From positions 62,001 to 126,000 of the forward strand of contig JAKMXF010000319.1 in NCBI GenBank assembly GCA_024704765.1: a stretch of DNA of 64,000 bases, written 5' to 3'. The position numbers and the translations under genes were made by a program. The notes below the pieces were generated by a model that saw only the letters and a list, made by a program, of their open reading frames with translations, did not search any database and was not told where the DNA came from. Positions within the stretch are counted from its first letter, which is position 1. Each line of letters starts with the position of its first letter. Positions 16,013 through 27,700 of the stretch are shown here, in pieces. Origin of the DNA: Oopsacas minuta (lineage: Eukaryota; Animalia; Porifera).

Positions 16013-16755
16013 TTTATCAGTGAAAATTTAACAGAAAATATTGGGAAAATTCAGTTTAGAGTGCATAATATGAAGAATTGTAAATATCCCAAAGAGGCAA
16101 TACAATGAATATATATCTATACATTCTATCTGTGATTTAAATACCTATTCATTGGAACAATAATTGCTTTCCAGGTGTATATGGATAATAGAAGATATTT
16201 AGTGGAAATATTCGTGCGCATAATCAGTGATTTAATATTAACCGTAATAACTTGAATTAAAATCATAATCACACACACATTTTAGGATAAAAGCAGATTA
16301 ATCATTGTTTACTATTCATAAACTGTATATAGTGTTTGTCCATTGTAGATTGTTTATCCTTCGAGTTTATATCAAGGAGCCATAATTTTGGAATTTAATC
16401 GCTCCCCAAGTTGATAACACCGAAATAAGTAAAACACATCGTCTGTAAATTTTCAGCTGCGGTAATGCTGTGTGGGACAAATCACAAACATGGTACTGTG
16501 CATTAATTGGAGGCACTAAGCTACGCATTGATGTAAATTATACATTTCATAGTGCCGCCATCTAATAGTGTTACTTTAATTATTATATGCAATAAGCTTC
16601 TAATACACATCAACAATGTTTGCTCAATTCATAGAAAAGTAGTCGGCACAGTAATTAGATATGTTAACCATAAGAATATCATCAGATACACTATATAATC
16701 ATAATATTCACAATATTAAGACTTTGAATATTTAATGTTAAATAATCTTAAATGA

Positions 16756-18127
16756 ATGGCTACAATTCAAACAGAACCAGATTCACCAGATAATCTATTA
16801 TACATACAGATTGATGGGTACAGAGGTTACAAGCAAGATATTCTAACACTAAAACTATCTAAACTAGAAAACAAATTTCTTATTTGCACTGAATGTCATG
16901 GAATAGCCAGAGAAGCCGTGTTATGTGAAGGTAAAACTATCTGCACATTATGTACAGCAGGGAAACCGCATGAACCGAATGATGACGTCAGGGAGTCAGT
17001 TAACGAACTGAATGTCATCTGTCCATTGAATTATCGGAGTTGTGAATGGAAGGGAGAATTACGACACGTGGACCAACACCTTCTACAATGTGATCACCTC
17101 TTAATACTCTGTAATCAGGAATGTAGCACTATGCTAACTCAATACGATTTGACAGAGCACATTACAAACAGTTGTCCTATGAGGAATATACCATGTGAGT
17201 TCTGTGAGGATATCTGTTTAGCTAAGAATATGAATGACCATTTAATAGAATGTCCAGCATATATATTGGATTGTCCACAAGGATGTATGGAGAGAGTGAG
17301 AAGAGATAACATGAATGAACACACAGAAATACACTGCGAAATGAAGAAGGAACCTTGTCCATATTATGAATTTGGGTGCAAGACAAACTCTTTAACTAAA
17401 AGAGATGTACAAACACATCAACAAGAATATGTTGTGTCTCATCAGCAATGTTTGTATCAAAAATAACAAACAGCTGAAGATCGAAACAGCTGGGATTAAT
17501 GGGAGAGCGGATCATTTAGAGAAAGTATACAATGAACAGAAGGAAAGAATTGTCAATCTTGAGAAAGAAATCACGAAACACAACAAGGATGTTAACAAAC
17601 TGAAAACTGGATTAGAAAACCAAGAAAAATTGAACAAAGATTTACAAATTTTTGTAGAAAAGCAAAATGTTGAAATTAGATATATAAGAACAATTATGAA
17701 ACTACAGATTAATCAAGAGTTAACATCGGAAAATATAGAATTCTTCGATAAATTTGACTGGGATATAACTCATTTTTGGGATCGTATCATTACAGATCAA
17801 AAGATCGAAAGTCCTATATTCCAATTATACAATCATAATCTACAGAGTCAAGCCACATTTAAGAATCGCGGTTTTTCCAATGAATTACACATAAGTATAA
17901 GGTGTTTGGCATATAAAGCTATTCCACAGAAAAATCAATTCTGTTATTATATAGTTCAACTTATCAACAGAATTGAGGAAAATAAGTTAATTGTACAGAA
18001 AGGAAAAATAGATAGAGTCATTACAGGGGATTACACACTTATTACAATTGTGAGGACATATCGTTTTCATCTCTTCATTCAAAACGATCCTTACTTAATT
18101 CGAATACAATTAATACCAACACTATAA
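16756..18127 (+). pseudogene. TRAF-like gene, copy 1 (degenerate RING, TRAF zinc fingers, coiled coil, MATH-like domain), frameshifted
   Basis: ORFs 16756-17466 and 17405-18127. A net 11-nt deletion near 17460 relative to copy 2 shifts the frame. C-x2-C / CPLNYRSCEWKGEL / CPYYEFGC fingers are present, and the C-terminus FIQNDPYLIRIQL is MATH-like. Confidence 0.75.
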
Positions 18128-18612
18128 ACATTAGTGTATTGATATATTTGTATTATAACATTTTTCCCCTGCTTACTAATATTATTATTATATTTGTGTT
18201 AATTGAGTAATGCTTTATAACATGACAGATATTAGTATATTTTGCTGATATTTCATAATTATAAATTGTATTAGAATATAACTACATATAACCAGATGTA
18301 TAGCTAAATTCCTGTGGGGAACAACTAACAATGAGGGGGTAAGGGAGATAATGTGAGGAAATCAGGCAAATATCCTATACGATATAGATCTTGGGTACCT
18401 GGGGCGGTCTGGGCCCCCGAGCTCTAGTGGTGAAGACCGTATTTTTGGAACGTTTACATAGAGGTTGCAGCCAATTTCCTTGGTGGACCCACTGGTAGGT
18501 CTGATTAGTCTCCTAAAACATGGCGATAATTTCTGGACGAACCCATTTTTCATATAAAAACCATAAACACATACTCATACATTGAGAAGTTATGTAATGT
18601 AAGAGTACACAG

Positions 18613-18982
18613 CTATTCAATATAAGAATTCTGTATAACATTATCAGTCCTATCACATATAATTTTACAAGCTTCTAGTAGACTTTGTAAAAACTTATGA
18701 CCAATTTCGCGAAAATCCTCCAGGGTGATTTGAAAGTCCTTCTTCTCTCCCTGGTTAAAACCGCAGTACGTCAATTCTAGAGTGTAAGAACAAGGAATAT
18801 CCAAGTTTGTACCAACAACTACACGTCCTCAGTGTAATTTGGATTTTTCAATCGTATTTGAACAGCTTTGCAGATCAAAACCGGCATAATTCTCCACGAA
18901 AATGCTCGGTAAAATCTCTTCAATTTTACTATGAGAATTACACCCATACATAAATAGATTTTTCTTCAAAGAATGGCCATGA
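18613..18982 (-). pseudogene. Promoterless duplicate of the CCP1-like 3' end
   Basis: About 9 differences in 370 nt (manual count) versus 21114-21483. It begins at the duplication junction and also carries the in-frame TGA (18829-18831). Confidence 0.85.
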
Positions 18983-19287
18983 GCTGCGGTAATGCTGTGT
19001 GGGAAATGTCAAATCACAAACATGGTACTGTGCATTAATTGGAGGCACTAAGCTACGTATTGATGTAAATTATACATTTCATAGTGCCGCCATCTAATAG
19101 TGTTACTTTAATTATTATATGCAATAAGCTTCTAATACACATCAACAATGCTTGCTCAATTCATAGAAAAGTAGTCGGCACAGTAATTAGATATGTTAAC
19201 CATAAGAATATCATCAGATACACTATATAATCATAATATTCACAATATTAAGACTTTGAATATTTAATGTTAAATTAGCTTAAATGA

Positions 19288-20688
19288 ATGGCTACAATAC
19301 AAACAGAACCAGATTCACCAGATAATCTATTATACATACAGATTGATGGGTACAGAGGTTACAAGCAAGATATTCTAACACTAAAACTATCTAAACTAGA
19401 AAACAAATTTCTTATTTGCACTGAATGTCATGGAATAGCTAAAGAAGCTGTCTTTTGTGAAGGTAAAACTATCTGCACATTGTGTACAGCAGGGAAACCG
19501 CATGAACCTAATGATGACGTCAGAGAGTCAGTTAATGGACTGAATGTCATCTGTCCATTGAATTATCGGAGTTGTGAATGTACAGGAGAATTACGACACG
19601 TGGACCAACACATTCTAGCAATGTGATCACCTCTTAGACATACTACTGAGTTGTAATCAGGAAAATACACTATAACTCAATTTCATTTGATACAAACAGT
19701 TGTCCGAGGAGTTCTGTAGGATGTTAGCCAAGAATGTGAATAAGCAGTTAACAAAACAGCATATATATTGGATTGTCCACAAGGGTGTATGGAGAGAGTG
19801 ACAAGGGATAAAATGAATGAACACACAGAAATACACTGCGAAATGAAGAAAGAACCTTGTCCATATTATGAATTTGGGTGCAAGACGAACTCTATAACTA
19901 AAAGAGATGTACAAACACATCAACAAGAATATGTTGTGTCACATCAGCAATGTTTGTATCAACAAATGAAACTATCGAATAAACAGCTGAATATCGAAAC
20001 GGCTGGGATTAATGAGAGAGCGGATCATTTAAAGAAAATGTGCGATGAACAGAAGGAACAAATTCTCAATCTTGAGAAAGAAATCACGAAAAACAACGAA
20101 GATGTTAACAAACTGAAAACTCAACTGGAAAACCAAGAAAAATTGAACAAAGATTTACAAATTTTTGTAGAAAAGCAAAATGTTGAAATTAGATATATAA
20201 GAACAATTATGAAAATACAAATGAATCAAGAGTTAATATCGGAAAATATAGAATTCTTCGATAAATTTGACTGGGAAATAATTCATTGTTCAAATTCTTT
20301 CGATGAAGATCGGAAGATGGAAAGTCCTATATTCCAATTATACAATCATAATCTACAGAGTCAAGCCACATTTAAGAATCGCGTTTTTTCCAAGAAAATA
20401 CAGATAAGTATAAAGTGTTTGATAGATAAAACTATTCCACACAAAAATCAATTCTGTTATTATAAAGTTCAACTTATCAACAGAATTAAGGGAAATGAGT
20501 CAATTGTAGAGAAAGGAAAATTAGATAGAGTCATTACAGGGGATTACACACTGATTACAATTGTGAGGACATATCTATCATCTCTTCATTCAAGACGATC
20601 CTTACTTAATTCGAATACAATTAATACCAACACTATAAACATTAGTATATTGATATATTTGTATTATAACATTTTCCCTGCTTACTAA
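19288..20688 (+). pseudogene. TRAF-like gene, copy 2, frameshifted
   Basis: A 1-nt insertion near 19617, several indels at 19630-19770, and a 2-nt deletion near 20575 relative to copy 1. The finger-to-coiled-coil junction that is broken in copy 1 is intact here. Confidence 0.8.
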
Positions 20689-21113
20689 TATTATTAGTAT
20701 ATTAATTGCAAAATTCTTTATAACATGACAGATATTAGTATATTGAATGATATTTCATAATTATAAATTGTATTAGAATATAACTACATATAACCAGATG
20801 TATAGCTAAATTCCTGTGGGGAACAACTAACAATGAGGGGGTAGGGGAAATAATGTGAGGAAATCAGGCAAATATCCTATACGATATAGATCTTGGGTAC
20901 CTGGGGCGGTCTGGGCCACCGAGCTTTAGTGGTGAAGACCGTATTTTGGAACGTTTACATAGAGGTTGCAGCCAATTTCCTTGGTGGACCCACTGGTAGG
21001 TCTGATTAGTCTCCTAAAACATGGCGATAATTTCTGGACGAACCCATTTTTCATATAAAAACCATAAACACATACTCATACATTGAGAAGTTATGTAATG
21101 TAAGAGTACACAG

Positions 21114-23951
21114 CTATTCAATACAAGAATTCTGTATAACATTATCAGTCCTATCACATATAATTTTACAAGCTTCTAGTAGACTTTGTAAAAACTTATG
21201 ACCAATTTCCCGAAAATCCTCCAGGGTGATTTGAAAGTCCTTCTTCTCTCCCTGGTTAAAACCGCAGTACGTCAATTCTAGAGTGTAAGAACAAGAAATA
21301 ACCAAGTTTGTACCCACAACTACACGTCCTCAGTGTAATTTGGATTTTTGAATCGTATTTGAACAGCTTTGCAGGTCAAAACCGGCATAATTCTCCGCGA
21401 AAATGCTCGGTAAAATCTCTTCAATCTTACTATGAGAATTACACCCATACATAAATAGATTTTTCTTCAAAGAATGGCCATGAAAATCACAAAATATCAA
21501 AGGCTGTTTTCCTAACGAAATTAATCGCTGTATCAATGCTTTTGTATGGTAAATAGTTGGATGTAAATTGGGTGAAGGTGCATGCCATTGTCTGTTCAGA
21601 TCAAACCCTAGCAAATTACATCTTGTGTAACCGTATATAACTCCATCAGGATTCAACATTGGCACAATTTTAAATATGAATTTCGAACGTAATTCTACGG
21701 CAATCGGATCATCAGTGAGTAACATTTCAATGATACTTTTAATCATCCAACTTGAATTTGATTCGCCTGGGTGTACGCGTGCTGACAACACAATATATTC
21801 TTTAGAAACCTCCACGTTTTTTCCAAAATCTGTTATTGTAACCAGTGGACATGGTATACCCGTATATGTATAGCACAAAGTGTCAATCTTAAGATACATA
21901 TTAGAAATTGATGTATTCACCCAGTTTGATATATCATGTTGAAGATTAGTGTATGTGTATGGAAAATGGTAAGCGATATAGCATTCGTCGTTATCAAATG
22001 GGAAATTCAGGTTAAATGTAAGAGAATATAATTTTCCAGTTGTGTTTGTATCCGTGGTTAGTTTAGTATAATCACTATCACCATAGTAAAGCAATGATCC
22101 AATGCGAAACCAACCTATTCCACTTTCGCGATTAGATTTTCGCGAAAATATCAATGGTTGCATTCCACTTGAAAACTGCGAACTATTTTTCTCGAAATTA
22201 ACAAATTTGAAAGTGTAGTTCGTGGATGAATCCATGTTAGTGACTTTGAATAAAAACCATTGGACATGTCTAGTTGTATCTGGTCGTAGGATGACGTCAT
22301 ATGAATGTGTATTAATTTTGGTTATTTTCAGTAAATTCGAACTCTCAAAATCAGCCGAAAATACCAAACTTTGGGAATTATCGAGCATTGGCAACGGTGA
22401 ATGAATGAAATTATCTTTCTTAATTCGCTTAGGGTTTAGAAGTGGGTCAATAAAAATGATTTTCTGGCGGAAAACTTCCTTTTCAATCGAGTAAATTGGT
22501 TGATTAATAATATTAAGCTTTGCTAAAGCAATAGATAGTGTAATGTTATTCTCCTTTTGGTATAGTTGTGTCGGTTCCCCACGGAGAGTTGGACTTAAGA
22601 AGGTGTGAAATTTCGGTGAAATGCTGTAGCTTTTGGTAGAATACGCGAAGTAATTAGAGTGTTTTTGTAGATTTTCATAAAATTGTGTTAATTTTGGATC
22701 GATAATGTGATCGGGTTTCCGTGTTCTGAAAAATTCAGATAGAAGAGTTTGCGTGTCAAATTTCGCGGTGGAATTAAAACAATACATCGATAAACTATCC
22801 AAGTCAATTAATGATTGTATTGTAAGTGAGAAATTTCGCGATTTAGATTCCTGGCACTCTTCAAAGAATAAATGTAATCCCTCTATCGTGGGCGATGAAA
22901 TAAATTTTCCATCACATTTTGGTGAAATTCGACTCTGCATCGAAATCTGTTTCTTATAATCATCAATCTGAATATCAGAATTGTGACAAGGATAAGCCAA
23001 ATTTTTTCTGAGAATAAAATCTTGAATTATCTCTAAATTCAACTTAACAAACCGATCTTTCAATTCAGAATTCATAGTAACCAATTGAAACTTCGCAAGA
23101 GTGTCCCTCAAGGTTGTGAAAAGATTTGAATCTATCATTACAGCGTGCCCACGCGGAATTCGACTAATATCCTTGAATAGCTCCAGTACATCGAAAATTT
23201 CCTTAAAATCCTTGAAATCGAACATCAAAAATGAATAAAATCGAACCAATTCGTCCACGAGATTCTTCCAAGAAGTGAGTGCCAAAATGCCTTTGTTTTT
23301 AACAAGCAATCGAATAGAATCAATGCAAATTGAAACAACATGATGTAATGGGAGACTCGCGTTGTCAAGGTAAGACAAAAGAATTCTCATCGCGAAATGT
23401 TTGCGGAATGCAATACAAGTTGTAGGTGATATAGCACAGCGATGAAACACGGTTATTACCGGCAGAGCATGATCAAAATCATTCGAATAATACCGCAAGT
23501 TTTCCAATAGAAATGTTGTAAGATGGAAACAACGAAATTTTGTACTGAATTTCGCATCTTTTTCTGATAATTTCGCGAGTAGGATAAAGTGTATTGTAAA
23601 ATTCTCAGGGATAGCGCTTGGAAATAAAGAAATCGACTCAAATATCGCTTCTGTCCCATTGAACTCAACTATCCGTTTTGACCCATATTTCACGAGTGTC
23701 ACTTGAAAAAGTACTTGAATCAAATCCTGTTGAATTTCGAAATCCCTCACCAACCGAAAACTGTCAATTAAGATTCGAAGTATTGAGCTTTTGCTAACTA
23801 AAAATTTGGCGTTTGTTTTCGGTTTTTGGAAGAAGAAATCTACAATTCTCAAAACTTGATCCTGTATTTGAATTGTATTGTGGGTTTCAACTGTTGCAAC
23901 CATTGAGTTAAATTCGTATATTAGATCGACCAAATTCAATTCTTGATTCAT
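21114..23951 (-). CDS. AGTPBP1: Cytosolic carboxypeptidase 1-like tubulin deglutamylase (M14) with an in-frame TGA at 21330-21332
   Basis: 873-aa intronless ORF with an N-terminal helical (ARM-like) region, the pro-domain FSADFESSNL and QWFLF, zinc motifs HPGES and DFHGHS, and NPDGV...DLNRQW. After the TGA the same frame continues 71 aa (GRVVV...SYTLELTYCG...EIGHKF), matching the CCP1/CCP4 C-terminus. Confidence 0.85.
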
Positions 23952-24746
23952 TTTTATTTTTATCTAATGTTGAGAAGTTAAATACACACTATTTATAACA
24001 ATTGGGGTGTGCTGGACGTTTCCAGTTCGCACATTGAAAATTTGTTGCCAATCAGGACTTTCGAGACCTTTGAGAAATGCATTATTTTCATATAACTGGC
24101 ATGTCGTATACAATGGATATCGCTTATAGGAACAAACTCATGTTTTTATAACCGAAAATATCGTATTGCCGGCTACGATATACATGAATACATGAGATCC
24201 TCTTTTCAAAGGCTGTTTACTAAATCTAGTATGTTGCAATACCTGTGTTCTTATATCCGGCACAAAATCAATGGAGTAGAATCCAAAAATCGGATAATCG
24301 AGCTTGTGTTCTTAACTTCTTATAATCGGCATGTTCTTATACCGATGTTCTTATAACTGGTGTTCTTATATCCAGCATCTACTCTATATCTTACCCCAGT
24401 TCTACCCATAAACCATCCATAACCACACACAAATAAGGAAAGAAACAAAAAATAAAGCAAAGAAATGAATAAGCATACTGTACCTTTATATCAGTTCAGA
24501 AATCTTACAAAAAAGTTCCCAATAATACCAGGTAAGTACAATTATGAGAGACAAGTATACAACCAAATAAAAGGTACAAGACAGCAAAGCAAGAAATGGC
24601 AGAGATGCAACTAGCTAGCTAACAACATGTAAATGCGTGTGTATATAAAAATGTAACAAAAGAAATAACAGTTAGCGCTGGAGGCAATATGCGCAAGGCC
24701 TATTTTGTTTGTAATTAAGCTTGAATGTGCGAATTGGATGCTTTGT

Positions 24747-27700
24747 TCAGATGGACTGTGCTTCATTATCATCTTGTATTATTGGCTTATAGATAGGGGA
24801 AAATGGATTTTCATAACGTTTAACTTGCTGTTTCAACTGTAAGTTTTGCTCCCGTAAAATATCATTGTAAAACTCAAGAGATTTTACCTTCTCTTCACAC
24901 TGGTGTAGTTTGATTTTCAACAAATCTACTTCTGGGTTTTTGAATGCCTCATCACGTGATGTTAAGCTGAGCGGGCTTAATTTGTGCGGACCTTCTTCTG
25001 TTGCATCTGTATTGTCAATTGACCAACGTCTGGAGCGTGTAACACCATCAGATTTCGCCCCTAAATAATCACTTATCGATTGTGTGGAGTGGCTGAGGCT
25101 TTTTTGGGGTGGACTCCTAATCTTGAAATCAGATAACTCAGGGCTAAATGGGGAATCTGATTTGGGTGGCGAATGTTTAAAGTATTCCGGCAATGGTTGT
25201 TCAGTTGAAACCGGTATGGCGCTAAGGTCACTAAGCTGAGCATGTATAGCTGTTCCAACTGGGAGTGTCGTTGTGTTGGAAAATGGCTTAGAAAGTGAAC
25301 TGAGTGCGGGTGTTTGTTCAGTTGGGTTGCTGACAGGAATTTGCCCGGTAAACTGATGAGCAAATGGATTATAATTACCTTCATTTGAATTTGGGAGAGT
25401 GCCAGTCTGGAAATAGAACTCCTCATCAGCTCGTGAAAAATGTAGATACTTACAATTGGGTAAATTACACTTCCCGCGCTGGAAATTGCGACAGAATGTG
25501 ATTATGTTTGTAGCTTTATCTCTCTGAGCAATGTCCAAGTTCTCCGCGTGTCTGTACTTACATTTTTGGCCTCGCATGCATTTCCCTCTCTGAAAATCTC
25601 TATTGTGAAATTATATTGATAAAATAACTGGTGAAAACAACCGAGTTCTACTGTACATCGTATAGAATTAATGCATTTCTTCATGAGGTTATTAGAATCG
25701 ACGAAAATAGATCACAAATCACTGAAACTTTGCTGAAAATGCAAACATAATCTATAAATATACTCCGTGCGATTGAGGCTATTATTAAATAGAATTATCT
25801 GAAGTGGCATAACTAATTAATGTATACTCTAATAGAGCTAATTTTGAATAATTCTTGGTATCATTTTAGCCAATTAAAATACTGTCAATCAGCACAGTTG
25901 TTTGGCAAATATTTTGAGATTAAGCCTGACTATAGCGAATATAACCAAATTCGTTTGAATAGACTTTTAAGAAATTCAAGTTTCATACATTTTCAAGCCA
26001 AAATTGCAAAATTCAACTATATTTCGATCAGCTGTTTGATGGTTCTGAAACAAAATTCGAAAATCAGTTTCAGCTATAAAAGTTTACAAGCACGGTTCCC
26101 AACCATTCTCACCCGTGGACCCTCTATACCAAGATGAATACACACTGTGGCCCCCTTCCCATAGACTGCAATACAATTTTTGAGATCCGGTGGAACCATT
26201 TTGTCCTCTGTGAACCACCAGCGGTACCCAAGTGATCAATGGACTTCAGGTTGGGAACTGCCGCGCTGATTTAGCATATCTGCAAAAAATATGATATATT
26301 TGGATAAAGTAGGAAATTACACCTGTAATACAAAATGTAAATTGACACAAAGTACATATGGCCGAAAGAACTGTTGAGAAAAGACCTTGGGAAATGAGAC
26401 TACAAAACTATGACGTATTTTACAATATTGTATTTGCACCCAAAATATCAAAATATCGACATTTACCCACTTTCGATGGGAAAATATAGGCGCGTTTCAT
26501 CCTACACATAAACTCATTGTACATTATAAAGTTAATAATCCGTATAATATTATGAGATGACTTGTTTCTCATTGAATCAAATGCTAACAACCAGTCACCA
26601 TATGCTATCCGTTAGTAAAAACAGCTCGTGATAATTACATTAGCATGAACTCCTGTTCACAAAATCCTTCAAACCATAATTTGAATTTCAAATACCTATA
26701 AAGGACTATCCAGATGTGAGAAGCCATTGATCACTTTAAACGAAATGCTAATTTTACAGATGTACGGACAGACAACAATGGTAGTAATAACAAATATAAC
26801 TGTACACATACATAGCCTGATAGCTATGCCAACTGCTTGTCATAAATGCTATTAGTAAGTGAATTAGTTAGGGGAACATCTTCATAAGATTGTGACTGGT
26901 ATACTGTTAGGGACATTTTGTAAATACTTGCCATCTAAACAAATCTTTCCTGACAAGTCTAGTCAGTAGCGGTCGCAGAGGTCGCAGAGTTCTGCCAGAT
27001 CCCCTAGAACACCACTGTGGTACTGACCATTATATAATTAGATTTTGCCCCGGGTTTGAAACTTGGACCCAGCTTGCCTCGGATATGCAAAGTCCTGGGA
27101 CCACCCCTATCAATCTAGTCATCTTACCGACCCCTGCATGTAATGTTCTTGGATTCCCAATGCCAATTGCTTGGATTTTATGAGGTAACACAAAATATTC
27201 GAATAATCTCCCCCCATTACATACATATTACACACGAAAATAGCCAGAAAAATAGCAAAATGTCTCATTTGGGATTTTGAAAATCTTCCCCTCTAAATAT
27301 GAAGAAATTTTTGAGATTATCCAGCGATCCGAGAGAGCAGTATGCAATATGTGAAAGGATGTATACATTTCTAAAATGATAGAGTTACTAATCGCATAAG
27401 GATAGAGTTTGAAATATGAATTCTAGAAAAACAATCTGAAACTATACAGCACTACAATAACCTCATTCAACGACAATCTCACATTCTAAGAATAGACACA
27501 AATATTCGAATGACAGTCTTAGAATTGTTACAACTTAACGTGGAATGACGTCATTTAACGTAACCCCATAGAAGCAAGTAAAATGCGGGTTTATCATTGA
27601 CCAAATATGCCAATACATAAAAGTACAATATTTCCATCTAATTTCAAATATCTAATCAATGATTTCAGACTCGATAGCAGCAATATTTTGCAAATCAAAC

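Follow-up and report, generated by a model that had tools for sequence, protein, structure and literature searches.

CCP1 (AGTPBP1, also Nna1) and CCP4 are M14D cytosolic carboxypeptidases that act as tubulin deglutamylases. Here we analyse a CCP1-like gene on the minus strand of a 64,000-nt stretch of the Oopsacas minuta genome ("the window", C319:62001-126000, part of a 61.46-Mb assembly in 365 contigs), in which an in-frame TGA stands ahead of the codon for the catalytic Glu. The sponge gene has the same three Pfam domains as CCP1 and CCP4, in the same order, and encodes HPGE, HGHS, the Arg two residues past the TGA site, and S-Y-T-x-E. In contrast to CCP1 and CCP4, its frame is cut by the TGA between the third zinc ligand and the Arg and Glu. 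The glass-sponge genes also differ from them in being intronless and short (914–946 aa), with Cys at the site where most CCPs have Thr. We consider it probable that the TGA is a recent Cys-to-stop allele of the sponge's only CCP1-type gene, which is transcribed and would yield a truncated, catalytically dead product.

The locus can also be compared with systems outside the active CCPs. Selenocysteine (Sec)/Cys homolog pairs, such as those of the thioredoxin reductase and MsrB types in this genome, likewise have a UGA opposite Cys, a conserved downstream frame and a tRNA-Sec in the same organism; unlike for them, no selenocysteine insertion sequence (SECIS) was found for the CCP gene, and the CCP site is no redox centre. 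With young unitary pseudogenes and nonsense alleles, the gene shares a single disabling substitution in an otherwise intact, transcribed gene that has intact orthologs. Lesions can also be copied from a neighbouring pseudogene by gene conversion, as with CYP21A2 and CYP21A1P. The sponge gene, too, has an adjacent dead fragment with the same lesion, in a tract that has diverged far less than the remainder of the duplication; here, however, the conversion and its direction are putative, and the gene has no second disabling mutation yet. Finally, M14 pseudoenzymes such as yeast Ecm14 (PMC7706225) resemble the sponge product in being M14-family proteins with a predicted lack of catalysis. In the known cases the fold is complete and it is the catalytic residues that have been replaced, whereas the sponge product would lose the last 71 residues of the fold.

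The interrupted CCP1-like gene

The gene comprises the following parts, all on the minus strand:

23952–23965: trans-splice acceptor (AG at 23965-23964) and 12-nt 5ʹ untranslated region (UTR), recognised by a loose end at 23965 in RNA run X4 with a leader that matches spliced leader (SL) RNA genes
21333–23951: codons 1–873 of the CCP1-like open reading frame (ORF), assigned by translation, Pfam and 60–76% identity to six orthologs; it holds an N-terminal TPR/ARM-like region, the CCP N-domain and an M14 domain that contains the zinc-ligand motifs HPGE and FHGHS
21330–21332: in-frame TGA, codon 874, opposite Cys (TGC/TGT) in the six closest orthologs and Thr in most other animals
21117–21329: 71 post-TGA codons, with Arg876, the SYTLE strand with Glu892, and the C-terminal helix
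21114–21116: TAG, the stop of the ancestral full-length frame; orthologs end equivalently with TAA or TAG

Translation from the ATG at 23951-23949 gives 873 sense codons before the TGA, and the same frame continues for 71 further sense codons to the TAG. The coding region has no intron. The protein was searched as separate pieces on either side of the stop, which was written as X in the scripts. The 873-aa part matches TPR_CCP1_N, Pepdidase_M14_N and Peptidase_M14 (PF25571, PF18027 and PF00246), all above their cut-offs, and the catalytic half is 42–49% identical to animal CCP1 and CCP4. The original prediction, which had described a CCP1 deglutamylase with an in-frame TGA ahead of the catalytic Glu and a preserved downstream frame, agrees with both the domain matches and the translation. 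The zinc-ligand motifs VHPGE and FHGHS lie upstream of the TGA, and their columns do not vary across an alignment of 25 sequences; the roles of such HPGE and third-His motifs have been described for a Burkholderia CCP, BcCCP (PMC3940198). The codons for the specificity Arg876 (21324-21326) and the catalytic Glu892 of SYTLE (21276-21278) follow the TGA. Hence, the zinc site shares a polypeptide with the Arg and the general-base Glu only if the UGA is decoded.

Our searches of the assembly found no second CCP1-type copy, which answers the question of whether another intact CCP1 exists there. The genome also has other CCP paralogs, of which at least one is intact and one has short introns. A CCP2/3-like paralog at C300:474947-479027 (L003/L005) has short introns, one of which interrupts the zinc motif between HPG and E.

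A word-based protein search of public ENA assemblies identified the six closest orthologs in other glass-sponge assemblies. They are 914–946 aa long, 60–76% identical to the window gene and all intronless, and they end at the equivalent of the window TAG. The codon aligned with the TGA is Cys, as TGC or TGT, in all six, within the motif K-S-K-L-R/K-C-G-R-V-V-V; the TGA is thus a single base change away from the ortholog codons. The residue that precedes the stop is His in both copies of this sequence in the window (see below), as opposed to Arg or Lys in all of the orthologs. The original prediction had stated that CCPs have a small residue, Thr or Ser, at this position. That is true of most of the 112 CCP1/4 homologs with a recognisable motif (Thr in 99, Ser in 2), but 11 have Cys, six of them being the sponge orthologs and the other five coming from bdelloid rotifers. 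The bdelloid CCP1-like proteins (P0009, P0011, P0016, P0020 and P0050) have an independent Cys in the motif K-Q-K-E-G-C-A-R; P0020 was grouped with them through this shared motif.

What does the segment beyond the TGA contribute to the enzyme? In the 25-sequence alignment, R326, Y339, T340 and E342 are invariant, corresponding to the Arg two residues past the site and to the Y, T and E of S-Y-T-x-E. When the catalytic half of an ortholog is modelled with AlphaFold (pLDDT 84, pTM 0.86), Cys 324 stands ahead of a helix (325-332), a strand (338-342) whose last residue is the Glu, and a long helix at the C-terminus (360-389), with these tail elements at pLDDT ~85–95. Foldseek matches the ortholog model to CCP5 (query TM-score 0.78–0.81) and to bacterial CCPs across the full length of these proteins, with query TM-scores of 0.71–0.81 over the CCP5 and bacterial CCP structures together. 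In BcCCP, the general base Glu344 lies ~76 residues past the third zinc ligand, His268 (PMC3940198); in the window gene, the spacing from the third zinc His to the Glu is ~69 residues. Pfam and PDB sequence searches with the 71-aa tail or the ortholog C-terminus did not reach the catalytic Glu, and its placement comes from alignment invariance, the structure model and the fold search.

In the model, the tail is an integral part of the CCP fold, and it is confidently modelled. A stop at codon 874 would remove the specificity Arg, the strand with the catalytic Glu, the C-terminal helix and part of the fold core. Since the 873-residue product would lack these elements, it is not expected, on the logic of the M14 fold, to act as a deglutamylase. 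This accords with the original prediction that stopping at the TGA removes catalysis.

Is the TGA present in the transcript? Our read evidence consists of contigs from four runs (X1, X3, X4 and X5), and such contigs drop rare variants. X1, X3 and X4 come from one sample, probably the source of the assembly itself, and are not independent of one another. X1 and X3 are DNA-like, with a flat depth of ~65 across unique parts. X4 covers only 21156-24005 and has a spliced leader at 23965. X4 is RNA, because the leader joined at 23965 matches SL RNA genes, and the CCP mRNA is trans-spliced 12 nt ahead of the ATG. Contigs of X1, X3 and X4 show no alternative letter or joint at 21330-21332, though much weaker variants are listed elsewhere. 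The UGA is therefore present in the DNA and in the mature mRNA, where it is neither spliced out nor detectably edited; a check of the codon in reads and cDNA, as the original prediction had advised, thus leaves the TGA in place. An intron that removes the TGA was considered and rejected. There is a single in-frame GT...AG candidate; splicing out its 45 nt would cost 15 conserved codons, among them that for the specificity Arg, in a stretch that is coding sequence in the orthologs, and the RNA contigs have no joint there. X5 carries the label of another organism, is ~96% identical and has low depth; a fragment-sized protein search and a pattern scan of JGI metagenomes for the codon in this ~96%-identical relative gave nothing.

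Decoding of the UGA

The Sec machinery is present in the genome. The Oopsacas minuta genome paper reports a predicted tRNA-Sec and mentions a suppressor tRNA (PMC10280926). We find a tRNA-Sec that scores 77.4 bits and is called SeC (tca) by ARAGORN, together with four canonical SECIS elements elsewhere in the genome. A SECIS core lies 60–90 nt past the stop of a thioredoxin-reductase-like ORF (ending ...GCUS; L013, C66:1370638-1373672) and of an MsrB-like ORF (...RFUIFS; L011, C302:125347-128410). A small ORF ending ...GGGUG (L010, C22:615395-618453) also has a canonical SECIS 60–90 nt past its end.

At the CCP1-like gene, no SECIS was found in 18000-21400 with Rfam (E ≤ 10), nor on the minus strand of 20400-21400 with a pattern scan that recovered 4 of 4 positive controls. 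A loose version of the pattern gave merely two poor matches, far downstream. There is also no SECIS in a variant 3ʹ UTR taken from an RNA contig, which was scanned without 144 nt that lie outside the window sequence, and none in the 3ʹ flanks of the orthologs. The original prediction had likewise seen no convincing SECIS, and the search of the 3ʹ UTR that it proposed bears this out. One SECIS-like hairpin within the ORF (22154-22119) was rejected: its core is TTGA, its position is 800 nt ahead of the TGA, and hits of this kind are expected by chance at ~0.2 per kb.

The sequence around the stop is CAC-UGA-GGA, with G rather than C at the +4 position, and matches neither UGA-C nor UGA-CUAG. CAC-UGA-G, with G at +4, is a non-leaky stop context. 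The original prediction had noted that a TGA-CTAG readthrough context is missing, as we also find. Past the UGA, no stable RNA structure was detected; stretches of 91-143 nt downstream fold no better than shuffled sequences (z from +0.4 to +1.5). Among the 54 best-scoring tRNA genes there is no opal suppressor, and tRNA-Sec is the sole reader of UGA; as 63 of ~2900 tRNA candidates were scored, any count of suppressors is a lower bound. The one suppressor-like tRNA gene found was rejected as an opal suppressor, its anticodon being TTA, not TCA. It reads UAA, lies at C188:296142-296212 (L068) and is the lowest-scoring gene, at 35.6 bits. This gene is probably the "suppressor tRNA" of the genome paper; it is irrelevant to UGA.

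A change of the genetic code was also considered and rejected. The CCP1-like frame has one TGA among its 945 codons, and the six orthologs have none; TGA also ends three ORFs in the window (at 24747, 44740 and 59364), as the original prediction had argued against such a change.

Age of the stop codon and competing explanations

The 3ʹ end of the gene lies in a tandem duplication:

19230–21483 (unstranded): copy A, a ~2.25-kb tandem unit with a TRAF-like gene and the 3ʹ end of the CCP gene; the unit of copy B is 16730-18982
18613–18981 (minus strand): copy B of the CCP 3ʹ end, a dead fragment of 369 nt from "HGHS" to the TAG, with its TGA at 18829-18831

The original prediction had placed the TGA in both duplicate copies. 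The same TGA is indeed present in both, but copy B is only a 3ʹ fragment rather than a second gene, and there is no ORF upstream of it. Between the copies, 9 of the 369 positions of the CCP fragment differ. Divergence is very uneven along the duplication: 51 of 600 positions (8.5%) in the TRAF part against 13 of 700 (1.9%) in the CCP fragment and intergenic tract (Fisher p = 2e-8), the low-divergence tract being 20749-21448. Because of this unevenness, the simplest reading is that later gene conversion homogenised the tract, as the comparison of the copies suggests, and the TGA may have passed between copies, possibly from the dead fragment to the gene. It is therefore unsafe to conclude, as the original prediction had, that the TGA predates the duplication.

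Rates were estimated from pairwise and three-point distances and from a Tajima-type count. In a codon tree, the window gene is sister to two of the six orthologs (85% support), and dS to every ortholog is saturated (>1.4). From these comparisons, the gene, including its tail, appears to have been constrained for nearly all of its terminal branch, a pattern that fits a recent TGA and a decoded UGA alike. In the assembly letters, three changes (Glu868Gln, Asn/Asp884Val and Pro886Ser) set the full-length copy apart from the fragment as well as from every ortholog; the Gln868 letter is absent from all read contigs, which give Glu868. The changes at 884 and 886, both in the tail and at invariant sites and making up two of the 9 differences between the copies, would fit neutrality better than ω ~0.08, although the numbers are tiny.

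Does the open frame past the TGA argue for its use? In simulations, a 71-codon tail stays open under neutrality with P = 0.63–0.89 at the observed divergence. The open tail has no evidential weight, because 71 codons usually stay open under neutrality, and the claim that the survival of both post-TGA segments supports function is not upheld. The original prediction's case for selection on a truncated pseudoenzyme is similarly weakened, in that its open-frame argument is weak and its timing is undermined by the uneven divergence of the copies.

We propose that the TGA is a genuine nonsense codon that arose when one base changed in a Cys codon, still TGC or TGT in all the related glass sponges. 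The gene is still transcribed and trans-spliced to the spliced leader, with the UGA kept in the mRNA. Nonsense-mediated decay would not be expected, since the coding region is intronless and there is no downstream exon junction. Translation would end at codon 874. The N-terminal domains and all three zinc ligands would remain in the 873-residue product, whereas the specificity Arg, the general-base Glu with its strand, and the C-terminal helix would be lost. The lesion is likely to be young relative to the split from the nearest sequenced relatives. Descent could explain why the gene and the dead fragment share the TGA, but the uneven divergence makes gene conversion the likelier route. Fixation by drift would be plausible in a small, isolated cave population; the genome paper describes the population as an isolated one living in a cave (PMC10280926). 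As in a unitary pseudogene, there is a disabling mutation, the orthologs are intact, and no intact copy exists elsewhere in the assembly. The original prediction had named sense codons in the orthologs, together with neutral evolution or absent expression, as the signs of a recent pseudogene. The orthologs do have a sense codon, Cys, but the gene is nevertheless expressed.

Several observations weigh against a recent nonsense allele. The gene is still expressed as a mature mRNA. Its protein has not evolved faster than that of its sister (35 window-unique against 46 sister-unique amino-acid changes in the Tajima-type count), with no region accelerated, and its branch dN is below that of the sister, tail included. 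The 873-codon ORF is intact; in simulations at 1% divergence per lineage, neutral survival has P ~0.05–0.4, if the 1–2% divergence of the copies dates the TGA. An intact ORF of this length is a weak hint either that constraint persists or that the origin is very recent. A UGA opposite the Cys of homologs, in an organism that uses Sec, is the classic signature of a selenoprotein. At 20893 the 3ʹ end of the RNA contig departs from the window and continues with the 144 nt mentioned above, a stretch that falls outside the SECIS scans. Lastly, the read evidence consists entirely of contigs from what is probably the assembly's own sample, which leaves room for rare variants, editing and low-level readthrough.

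Which other explanations could account for the TGA? A Sec-containing CCP with Cys homologs would explain why the UGA aligns exactly with the Cys of six orthologs in an organism with tRNA-Sec and real selenoprotein genes, but we regard it as highly improbable: two methods with positive controls found no SECIS where the genuine selenoprotein genes of this genome have one 60–90 nt past the stop, no fossil SECIS lies behind the orthologs, the site is Thr in most CCPs and is no redox centre, and the dead fragment has the same TGA. Stop-codon readthrough, whether programmed or through basal near-cognate decoding by tRNA-Cys, tRNA-Trp or tRNA-Arg, could instead give some full-length active enzyme. 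Near-cognate decoding of UGA can insert Cys, which is the ancestral residue here, and the frame of this expressed gene is open to the ancestral TAG with a tail that is still ortholog-like. Nonetheless, the stop context is not a leaky one, no RNA structure follows it, the best tRNA genes include no opal suppressor, an open tail is expected by chance, and two tail residues that are invariant in all orthologs are altered in the full-length copy. We give such readthrough a slim chance. Decoding that yields a full-length, active CCP1, be it Sec insertion through a non-canonical or distant SECIS or Cys insertion through efficient gene-specific readthrough, has a slimmer one. Recoding of the CCP1 UGA in general is unlikely. 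The original prediction had offered either gene-specific recoding or selection on a truncated pseudoenzyme; the structural loss of catalysis on which it built stands, but with no SECIS, RNA structure, leaky context or opal suppressor, the recoding branch is unsupported.

The second of these options, that selection keeps the truncated 873-residue protein as a pseudoenzyme that binds, for example, glutamylated tubulin or partner proteins, seems to us improbable, though it is the likeliest of the rivals. A mature mRNA with the spliced leader is present, the 2.6-kb upstream ORF has survived intact against the simulated odds given above, protein change on the lineage is not accelerated, and M14 pseudoenzymes such as Ecm14 are known. 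However, a recent TGA would account equally well for the absent acceleration, as dS to the nearest orthologs is saturated; gene conversion may have made the TGA of the full gene much younger than the duplication; and, judging by the model, the M14 domain should become unstable once it has lost a core strand and its last helix, rather than persist as a binding module. The TGA could also be an artefact or a private variant, through an error of assembly or polishing between near-identical copies or through a somatic or individual-specific change. Polishing readily goes wrong in duplicated tracts, and read contigs contradict the assembly at the copy-A-specific letters 21350 and 21210 and at 22887. 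In contrast, the TGA stands with no listed alternative in each copy of the assembly and in contigs from three runs, one of them RNA at high depth, although much weaker variants were listed; the limit here is that the three runs share one sample. An artefact or private variant is very unlikely. On balance, a recent Cys-to-stop change remains the explanation that we favour.

If this explanation is correct, the TGA is an ordinary young nonsense allele, a well-known kind of event of modest, local interest. The only CCP1-type tubulin deglutamylase of the sponge would recently have lost catalysis while the other CCP paralogs were kept, providing a natural knockout for the balance of tubulin glutamylation in its flagellated tissue. 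The compact genome of the glass sponge has been reported to lack many core animal genes. The locus also offers a caution for selenoprotein prediction, in that a UGA opposite Cys, an open frame and a Sec-using organism are insufficient without a SECIS. Wide interest would follow only from Sec or efficient recoding, in which case the gene would encode the first recoded metallocarboxypeptidase, with Sec or Cys two residues before the specificity Arg.

Spliced leader and adjacent repeats

The leader on the CCP mRNA contig ends ...TCTTCATAAAAAACTTACAG and is joined 12 nt ahead of the ATG. Four near-identical SL RNA genes (C10:47273, C10:77411, C10:92158 and C16:67138; L078-L081) consist of the leader exon followed by GTAAGT, the exon/donor junction on C10 and C16 reading ...CTTACAG and then GTAAGT. 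A spliced leader has been reported in another glass sponge (PMC10282587). No donor follows a fifth exact leader match (L082), possibly a retro-copy or an encoded leader.

At 21350 the read contigs have C in place of the assembly letter, and the codon then reads Glu868 in agreement with every ortholog; they also depart from the assembly with G at 21210 and with T at 22887. The RNA run X4 departs from the assembly only at 21210, where about half of its depth keeps the assembly C. The mismatched letters are possible polishing errors or minor haplotypes in or near the duplicated tract.

Between the TRAF-like and CCP genes lies one further feature:

20893–21030 (unstranded): dispersed repeat of ~135 nt in the 3ʹ flank or UTR, with at least 8 copies at 73–78% identity on other contigs

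This repeat, together with the TRAF-family repeats, accounts for the read breakpoints at 20892/20893. Variant contigs of 20893-21030, at ~92% identity, occur in both DNA and RNA runs. The TRAF-type zinc-finger genes at 16756-18127 and 19288-20688 (plus strand) are 6–10% different from each other, with pN/pS ~0.75 and frame disruptions. They belong to a family arranged in tandem units of ~2.4–2.5 kb, more of which lie ~130 kb away at C319:209574-214479.

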